A program made the position numbers and the translations under genes. Shown here in pieces: positions 56,904 through 57,795 of a DNA stretch of 64,000 bases (within the stretch, counting starts at the first letter, position 1; each line of letters starts with the position of its first letter). Origin of the DNA: Salpingoeca rosetta (taxonomy: Eukaryota > Protista > Choanoflagellata); the NCBI GenBank assembly GCA_033442325.1, contig JAWQFM010000001.1, positions 2,145,479 through 2,209,478 on the forward strand. The letters run 5' to 3'. The notes below the pieces were generated by a model. The model was not told the origin of the DNA, did not search any database, and worked only from the letters and a program-made list of their open reading frames with translations.

Positions 56904-57795
56904 TCACTGTGGCTGGCCTTCTGTGAACAACTGTGGATACTTTGAGCGCAGCTCATGCATCTCCGCCACCTTGTCATTTAGCTCCTCTGTGTGACAATGG
57001 CATCGTTGGATTGTGTGAGCAGATGTGGTTTTGTGTAAGAGAGAGTGTGTGTCAGCGTGTGTAAGAGAGAGAGAGAGAGAGAGAGAGAGAGAGAGAGAGA
57101 GAGAGAGAGGTGTGTGTGTGTGTGTGTGTGTGTGTGTGTGTGTGTGTGTGTGTGTGTGTGTGTGTGTGTGTGTGTGTGTGCAGGCGTCAGAAAGCCGGCC
57201 CATCATCAGCGTGAATGGCTGTTGCAATATGTGTGCGTGTGTCTGTGTCTGTGTCCGTCTGGCTGTCTGTCCGTCTGTCTGTACGTGATGTACGTGCTGT
57301 GGTTCAAGTGGCTAAAACCCGGCTCAATCCACAACGCGGTGCGCACCTTGCTTCATGGACAGAGCGTCTGCCGCAGTCGACTTGAAGTACACACTGCCGC
57401 CACTGGCTTTGGCAGTGTACACTTTCTGCAATGCACACAACACAAAGAGACAGACACAAAGAAGCAGAGAGAGAGAGGGAGGGAAACAACCACAAAGCAT
57501 CAACAACGTGTGTGTGTGTGTGTGTGTGTGTGTGTGTGTGTGTGTGTGTGTGTGTGTGTGTTTGCCGCTGTGACACTGAACCACGTGCGAACACGCAACC
57601 TCCCATCCATGCATCCACACGCATGTGCACGTCTCTCCGCATACATCACAGCAGCCACAACCACACCCACACCAACCGTACCCTGGCCGAAGGCAAGTGC
57701 TGTAGCTCGCCCCGCAACACCTGCACTGCCTGCTTCTCCTTCGCCAACCCCTTGTTGGTGTTGGTGCTGGTGCTGGTGCTTGTGCGTGAGGTCAT
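56904..57795 (-). CDS. ASDURF: ASDURF-like small beta-prefoldin-like protein (91 aa, 3 exons)
   Basis: Exons 57795-57682, 57425-57347 and 56986-56904 have GT-AG borders and are in phase: MTSRTSTSTSTNTNKGLAKEKQAVQVLRGELQHLPSAR|KVYTAKASGGSVYFKSTAADALSMKQE|ELNDKVAEMHELRSKYPQLFTEGQPQ*. The helix / EL..L...RKVY..F(F) hairpin / helix pattern matches ASDURF as I recall it. Confidence 0.75.

Follow-up and report, generated by a model that had tools for sequence, protein, structure and literature searches.

A Stand-Alone Three-Exon Gene of the Choanoflagellate Salpingoeca rosetta Very Probably Encodes an Orthologue of the PAQosome Subunit ASDURF

Introduction

A small gene of Salpingoeca rosetta, annotated as PTSG_11577, is very probably the ASDURF orthologue of this choanoflagellate, carried on an mRNA of its own. 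From sequence comparison, we would put at roughly 0.85 the probability that this monocistronic three-exon gene, which would share a divergent promoter with a TLC-domain gene, encodes the ASDURF orthologue of S. rosetta, a beta-type, prefoldin-like PAQosome subunit. The gene was analyzed within a window of 64,000 nucleotides, a term used below for the whole stretch of DNA under study.

The prefoldin-like module of the PAQosome consists of URI1, UXT, PDRG1, PFDN2, PFDN6, and ASDURF, this sixth subunit being thought to replace PFDN1. Its membership of the module has been shown for the human and the Arabidopsis proteins. In vertebrates, ASDURF is read from an upstream frame of the ASNSD1 mRNA. The published Arabidopsis orthologue, At1g49245 (“Prefoldin chaperone subunit family protein”), is a separate gene, and its product has been recovered by affinity purification–mass spectrometry (AP-MS) with UXT, URI, PDRG1, PFD2, and PFD6. 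ASDURF has been described as a dependency in MYC-driven medulloblastoma, and it belongs to the few microproteins encoded by upstream reading frames (uORFs) that have both a defined function and a disease relevance. Our literature search found neither a publication treating prefoldin-like proteins and Salpingoeca together nor a discussion of the origin of the ASDURF–ASNSD1 bicistron.

Gene Structure and Expression

Three minus-strand exons, joined through two GT-AG introns, form a 276-nt in-frame ORF (91 amino acids plus stop), exactly as the original prediction had proposed from the splice arithmetic, and the protein letters quoted there match the spliced translation without exception. Coding exon 1 (57682..57795) starts with the ATG at 57795-57793, preceded by an in-frame stop, and encodes M1 to R38, comprising a Thr/Ser tail of low complexity and, behind it, the N-terminal helix; the exon closes in phase 0 with the residues PSAR, at the donor AGG/GTACGG. 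Intron 1 (57426..57681, minus strand, 256 nt, GT-AG, phase 0) contains a (CA)n microsatellite; if this intron were retained, the frame would reach a stop after 11 intron codons. Coding exon 2 (57347..57425, minus strand, 79 nt) begins with K39, ends one base into the E65 codon, and is the beta-hairpin exon (KVYTAKASGGSVYFKS...), whose vertebrate counterpart measures 76 nt; its boundaries are given by the sequence and by RNA-seq. It is followed by intron 2 (56987..57346, minus strand, 360 nt, GT-AG, phase 1), with the donor AAG/GTGCGC and with (CA)n and (TC)n microsatellites inside. The acceptors of both introns end in CAG. Coding exon 3 (56904..56986, minus strand) supplies the rest of the E65 codon and the C-terminal helix up to Q91, before the TGA stop at 56906-56904.

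Expression was examined in two runs of raw, stranded RNA-seq reads and in one run of transcript contigs. The joint between 57425 and 57682, which also fixes the end of exon 1, is crossed by 13 reads, 6 reads, and 1 contig in these runs, respectively, and the joint between 56986 and 57347 by 7 reads, 2 reads, and 1 contig. The junctions named beforehand as the experimental check on the model, 57682/57425 and 57347/56986, are thus both seen to the nucleotide. Both joints are flanked by CT..AC on the plus strand, and read depth in the introns is zero. The first mate lies on the plus strand in all junction reads, and on the minus strand in more than 99% of those from the plus-strand neighbor (58002-58371). 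This opposite orientation places the RNA of the three-exon gene on the minus strand. The gene has thereby been shown to be transcribed and spliced as modeled, with an exon depth of about one tenth of that of the neighboring TLC-domain gene.

Coverage of the minus strand ends at about 57850 on the 5′ side, which delimits a short 5′ UTR (57796..57853), and continues on the 3′ side to 56300 at least, giving a 3′ UTR (56300..56903) of at least about 600 nt that runs antisense over the convergent TBC gene at its 3′ end. Within this 3′ UTR neither a further splice nor a meaningful ORF was found, the minus-strand ORFs past the stop being low-complexity sequence of no significance. The mRNA has a single meaningful ORF, and the gene is monocistronic.

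Reads with loose ends at 56340 and an apparent joint between opposite strands at 56360/57785 were considered as signs of further splicing or of a downstream cistron, and both were rejected. The loose sequence at 56340 is absent from the window and the site is not flanked by splice dinucleotides; the sequence in common is a 21-nt ACC/AAC/GCC motif of low complexity.

Annotation and Relatives of the Protein

The gene had been described as hidden and easily missed by annotation, which does not hold: its 91-residue product is 100% identical to the annotated S. rosetta protein PTSG_11577 (EGD72296.1, XP_004998866.1, UniRef100_F2TW50), and the same protein is also present in EukProt. NCBI labels it “hypothetical protein” and UniRef gives it the automatic name “Prefoldin subunit 1.” The latter was rejected as evidence for PFDN1, as a true Myotis ASDURF, which carries Pfam PF21975 and shares 89% identity with the human ASDURF bait, bears the same name. 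The assignment proposed here would correct the automatic name of F2TW50.

When 1.84 billion representatives were searched exhaustively with HMMER, a single relative came out below an E-value of 1e-3, a 72-residue ORF of Microstomoeca roanoka (47% identity, E 2e-7). This putative orthologue is a complete ORF from a transcriptome and is devoid of the Thr/Ser-rich tail; on its contig it spans positions 1716-1934, with 1.7 kb of sequence ahead of it. The two proteins share 32 invariant positions, which are concentrated in the hairpin and its flanking helices. At the level of sequence, the gene has therefore been shown to be conserved in a second choanoflagellate genus. Word-index searches with the protein or with the two-sequence profile retrieved only the protein itself and the Microstomoeca sequence, metagenomes scanned with the choanoflagellate alignment yielded no relative, and database-wide sequence searches gave no connection from the S. 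rosetta protein to the animal ASDURFs. Sequence searches of the PDB with the protein, the choanoflagellate profile, or the ASDURF profile retrieved neither a prefoldin chain nor any ASDURF of solved structure.

Profile Comparisons with ASDURF and PFDN1

The Pfam model of ASDURF, PF21975 (ASNSD1-SEP), matches the S. rosetta protein collinearly (residues 7-77 against profile positions 17-86 of 96), with a sub-threshold score of 12.9 bits (E 0.12) compared with a gathering cut-off of 27 bits; no PF21975 match was reported for the M. roanoka protein. Since this model is apparently dominated by chordate sequences, a divergent non-animal orthologue can score below its cut-off. The nearest feature clusters in the ESM Atlas are also those of ASNSD1-SEP, which was treated as a lead only.

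Comparison sets of 120 amniote ASDURFs and 15 amniote PFDN1s were submitted to identical procedures. The human ASDURF sequence served as a bait, used only to retrieve entries, the best match being 97% identical; the entries retrieved were validated by their own NCBI/UniRef names and by PF21975. The human PFDN1 sequence was confirmed letter for letter by exact look-up (NP_002613.2, PFD1_HUMAN). The HMM of the amniote ASDURFs scores 14.1 bits against the S. rosetta protein and 8.8 bits against that of M. roanoka, values reached by none of 1000 shuffled sequences in either case. With the PFDN1 HMM, a narrower profile than the ASDURF one, as its sequences all belong to a single 90% identity cluster, the corresponding scores are 0.0 bits (293 of 1000 shuffles as good) and 2.8 bits (25 of 1000).

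The reciprocal comparison gives the same picture. The choanoflagellate profile scores a median of 17.8 bits (minimum 10.6) against 110 ASDURFs, every one of which lies above the maximum of 2200 shuffles (8.4 bits), and a median of 2.8 bits, i.e., the shuffle level, against the PFDN1s. Profile–profile alignment by hhalign of the choanoflagellate and ASDURF families gives a P-value of 9e-5 over 70 columns, or 1.3e-4 with a 16-sequence alignment, the alignments being collinear over 53-70 columns and the hhalign probability only 54-59%; the P-value with PFDN1 is 0.42. Within the limits of sequence comparison, the protein has thus been shown to be specifically similar to ASDURF and not to PFDN1.

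The behavior of the general Prefoldin_2 model (PF01920) is in line with this similarity. True ASDURFs match it below threshold, at 19.5-26 bits and over profile positions of about 20-90 of 106, and the M. roanoka protein does so at 22 bits over positions 23-90 of 106, under the threshold of 27.6 bits. PFDN1, on the other hand, with its 122 residues and long coiled coils, gives a full match of 76 bits over positions 2-105. No Prefoldin_2 match was reported by Pfam for the S. rosetta protein. This truncated coverage suggests that the choanoflagellate proteins bear the short-coiled-coil signature of ASDURF.

The likeness to vertebrate ASDURF extends to size (91 residues in S. rosetta, 91-99 in vertebrates) and to general layout, in which a disordered N-terminal tail precedes a core of about 70 residues. 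The two align collinearly, with E30, L34, R38, V40, Y41, L60, L67, and E76 invariant, although identity amounts to only about 20% and the S. rosetta PF21975 score lies under the cut-off.

Conserved Intron Positions

The gene structure is the strongest new evidence for the ASDURF assignment. Vertebrate loci used for this comparison were those of ASDURF from a bat and a bird, and of PFDN1 from a gecko and a bat; no human contig was included. In the bat and in the bird ASDURF locus, a single chain of GT-AG exons yields the annotated protein without deviation, and this chain was taken as the gene structure. Both genes have three introns, the first before IKEQK (phase 0), the second between KKNR and (K/T)VY (phase 0), and the third inside the N codon of (S/C)K-N (SESK^N, phase 1).

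In S. rosetta, intron 1 lies in phase 0 between SAR and KVY, and intron 2 in phase 1 inside the E65 codon of KQ(E)EL. The core of the MAFFT alignment is gapless apart from one loop residue, and in this alignment the two S. rosetta introns coincide with introns 2 and 3 of the bird and bat ASDURFs, at column 51 (phase 0) and column 77 (phase 1). Under uniform random placement, both matches would arise by chance with a probability of about 8e-5. The hairpin exon thus keeps the same borders in both lineages, and its length of 79 nt versus 76 nt is in line with an indel of one amino acid, the hairpin loop being one residue longer in S. rosetta. The first vertebrate intron, in contrast, has no counterpart in the S. 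rosetta gene.

PFDN1 is cut differently. Its coding exons in gecko and bat cover amino acids 1-11, 12-67, 68 to about 95, and about 95 to 122, with introns after K11, between GRM and FIL (inside the second hairpin strand), and near E95. In these two species no PFDN1 intron is found at either of the ASDURF positions, and no PFDN1 boundary coincides with an S. rosetta intron.

Predicted Structure

Two AlphaFold2 monomer models were obtained, both of only moderate confidence (pLDDT 70). Strands 38-40 and 47-52 and a helix 56-80 are present in the first, helices 10-32 and 54-80 in the second. Taken together, these predictions fit an order of helix, hairpin, and helix. Searches with these moderate models (Foldseek against the PDB, the ESM Atlas by shape, and a wide VIA-align search) did not recover a prefoldin chain and returned generic helices only, such as MutS clamp segments and the coiled coil of the hepatitis delta antigen (best Z 4.4). 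This outcome, which comes as no surprise if the subunit takes up its fold inside a hexamer, speaks neither for nor against a prefoldin fold.

By analogy with human and Arabidopsis ASDURF, the protein would fold as a helix, a beta-hairpin, and a helix with short coiled coils, and may occupy the PFDN1-equivalent slot of a hexamer based on URI and UXT.

Gene Neighborhood and Stand-Alone State

The gene lies between a convergent RabGAP-TBC gene and a divergent TLC-domain gene, with an RNase_T exonuclease gene also among its neighbors. The arrangement proposed in the original prediction, head-to-head with a ceramide synthase-type gene and convergent on a TBC gene, could be confirmed, including the distance of 268 bp between the two start codons (58063-57795). 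The first coding exon of the TLC-domain (ceramide synthase-type) gene (58063..58353, plus strand) is covered at a depth of about 100-190 and ends at a donor at 58353; the PF03798 domain was found in a downstream exon. The divergent intergenic region, 57796..58062 (267 nt), is common to both genes, whose transcripts begin no more than about 100 nt apart.

It had also been stated that no ASNSD1 follows, and the data agree. Besides the gene having its own mRNA, no ASNSD1-like sequence was found in the 64-kb window by tblastn with the coding pieces of bat and bird ASNSD1 (noise at 23 bits or less), pieces that match each other at E 1e-180 as a control. In the bat and bird loci, by comparison, a 638- or 641-residue Asn_synthase protein (ASNSD1) starts on the same strand only 22 nt after the ASDURF stop. 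The feature from which the family takes its name, i.e., ASDURF upstream of ASNSD1 on one mRNA, is absent for the S. rosetta gene, which does not sit in an ASNSD1 5′ leader. As the Arabidopsis gene shows, linkage to ASNSD1 is not required for membership of the family.

Alternative Explanations

That the gene encodes the canonical prefoldin subunit 1 of S. rosetta, shortened in this lineage, appears very unlikely. PFDN1 shares the general beta-prefoldin design and presumably an equivalent slot in the hexamer, ASDURF being thought to hold the PFDN1-equivalent position, and the sub-threshold Prefoldin_2 match of the M. roanoka orthologue could be read in the same sense, as could the UniRef name of F2TW50. 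This name is nevertheless worn by a true Myotis ASDURF as well, and the Prefoldin_2 match, at 22 bits over positions 23-90, is far from the full coverage seen at 76 bits in PFDN1. The PFDN1 HMM, hhalign, and the reciprocal profile all remain at the null level, with a PFDN1 profile that is admittedly narrow, so that no profile similarity to PFDN1 is detectable, and the PFDN1 introns lie elsewhere. The ASDURF assignment would also have to be revised if the protein were another beta-type prefoldin-like protein, either a divergent PDRG1, PFDN2, PFDN4, or PFDN6 or a choanoflagellate-specific paralogue, its likeness to ASDURF then reflecting only the common helix–hairpin–helix design. The families compared directly were indeed the two of ASDURF and PFDN1; the ASNSD1-SEP match is sub-threshold and the structure searches were uninformative. 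The PFDN1 control nevertheless indicates that a common architecture alone does not yield scores of the ASDURF level, and of the two families examined only ASDURF shows the two exact intron matches. A length of 72-91 residues with truncated Prefoldin_2 coverage is moreover the ASDURF pattern, unlike that of the canonical subunits of 110-135 residues. We consider this possibility unlikely.

A coiled-coil microprotein that evolves fast and has no relation to prefoldins, or a spliced but non-functional transcript with a fortuitous ORF, could account for the detection of only one relative among so many representatives, for the low-complexity, microsatellite-derived N-terminus, and for an expression that is moderate next to that of the TLC-domain gene. 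It is more difficult to reconcile with 47% identity in another genus, where the 32 invariant columns fall in the hairpin and helices, with the maintenance of the splice frame, and with sub-threshold Pfam matches that are to prefoldin-clan families only. Together with the intron and profile evidence for ASDURF, these observations make such an origin most improbable. The identity originally proposed, an ASDURF-like protein, is thus upheld by the profile tests, by two intron positions, and by the Pfam behavior, with PFDN1 at the null level.

Implications for the Origin of the ASDURF–ASNSD1 Bicistron

A stand-alone ASDURF is not new in itself, as plants have a published case. Compared by its published description, At1g49245 is likewise a stand-alone non-animal gene for a short beta-type prefoldin-like protein; it belongs to a plant and not to a holozoan, and it has AP-MS data, whereas the S. 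rosetta protein is known here from its sequence and its RNA. The proposal that the S. rosetta gene represents an independent, ancestral state can be retained in part: it is reasonable to regard the stand-alone arrangement as the older one, but the idea had already been published with the Arabidopsis gene. The gain is therefore incremental, the S. rosetta gene being also already annotated. What the choanoflagellate gene and its conserved introns add is a tightening of the evolutionary argument.

A free-standing orthologue that has the same two introns as the vertebrate genes implies that the vertebrate “uORF” is an old gene that later joined the ASNSD1 transcript, and not one born de novo in a 5′ UTR. 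Vertebrate ASDURF would then be a captured ancient gene, whose hairpin exon and flanking introns predate the choanoflagellate–animal split and which was absorbed within the animal lineage, a scenario that we regard as likely. The free-standing gene would have been captured into the 5′ leader of the ASNSD1 mRNA after this split. Such an absorption, introns included, would have tied a PAQosome subunit to ASNSD1 on one obligately bicistronic mRNA. The choanoflagellate case would thus narrow the origin of the bicistron to the time after the choanoflagellate–animal split, which is a later bound than the plant gene provides. It also points to S. rosetta as a unicellular, genetically tractable organism in which to manipulate ASDURF while leaving ASNSD1 unaltered.

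The N-Terminal Tail and the Family Entries

The Thr/Ser-rich N-terminal tail of the S. rosetta ASDURF-like protein (PTSG_11577/F2TW50) is encoded by an (ACC/AGC/AAC)n tract. The 72-aa Microstomoeca roanoka orthologue (P0002) is devoid of this tail, which thus seems to have arisen by lineage-specific expansion of a microsatellite within the coding sequence. The same tract attracts reads from other loci as partial matches, which produce spurious RNA joints of the "goes back" and "opposite strands" types at 57750-57790 and 56340-56360.

"Prefoldin subunit 1" is the automatic UniRef name of both F2TW50 and P0101, the entry from the bat Myotis brandtii, which carries the ASNSD1-SEP domain (PF21975) and shares 89% identity with the human ASDURF bait; this name is misleading for the ASDURF family. 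In the Sorex fumeus ASDURF entry (P0105), a 22-aa insertion separates KKNR from (K/R)VY, precisely where the conserved phase-0 intron lies; this is most likely an annotation error in which part of the intron was read as coding.

Other Features of the Window

At about 49970-50440, a run of N, seen as X in the ORF translations, has long (CA)n/(TG)n microsatellites on either side, and is an assembly gap within a microsatellite. Further along, a single uninterrupted minus-strand ORF of 905 aa (61207-63921) matches the RNase_T exonuclease domain PF00929 over residues 254-375 and also contains long low-complexity Thr/Gln/Asp tracts. This gene is intron-free, which is unusual in such an intron-rich region.

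Neighboring Genes and Their Transcripts

The ASDURF-like gene and the TLC-domain gene are separated by a very compact divergent promoter (57796-58062). Minus-strand RNA coverage stops at about 57850, and the plus-strand coverage of the TLC-domain gene sets in around 57860-57930. A single 2774-nt de Bruijn transcript contig (record 7 of the X4 data set) spans exon 1 of the TLC-domain gene, the spliced ASDURF-like mRNA and the 3' end of the TBC gene. Such merging of neighboring transcripts in an assembled contig, as seen here for S. rosetta, has a possible parallel in Microstomoeca, where the P0002 ORF begins 1.7 kb into its Trinity contig (EukProt comp16410_c6_seq6:1716-1934); the upstream 1.7 kb may correspond to a merged neighboring transcript, or to other content carried by the same RNA.

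On the opposite side, the TBC gene (plus strand) and the ASDURF-like gene (minus strand) converge and overlap at their 3' ends by several hundred nucleotides (56300-56890). Stranded RNA-seq covers both strands of this segment at similar depth, and the two mRNAs could thus form a natural sense-antisense pair.
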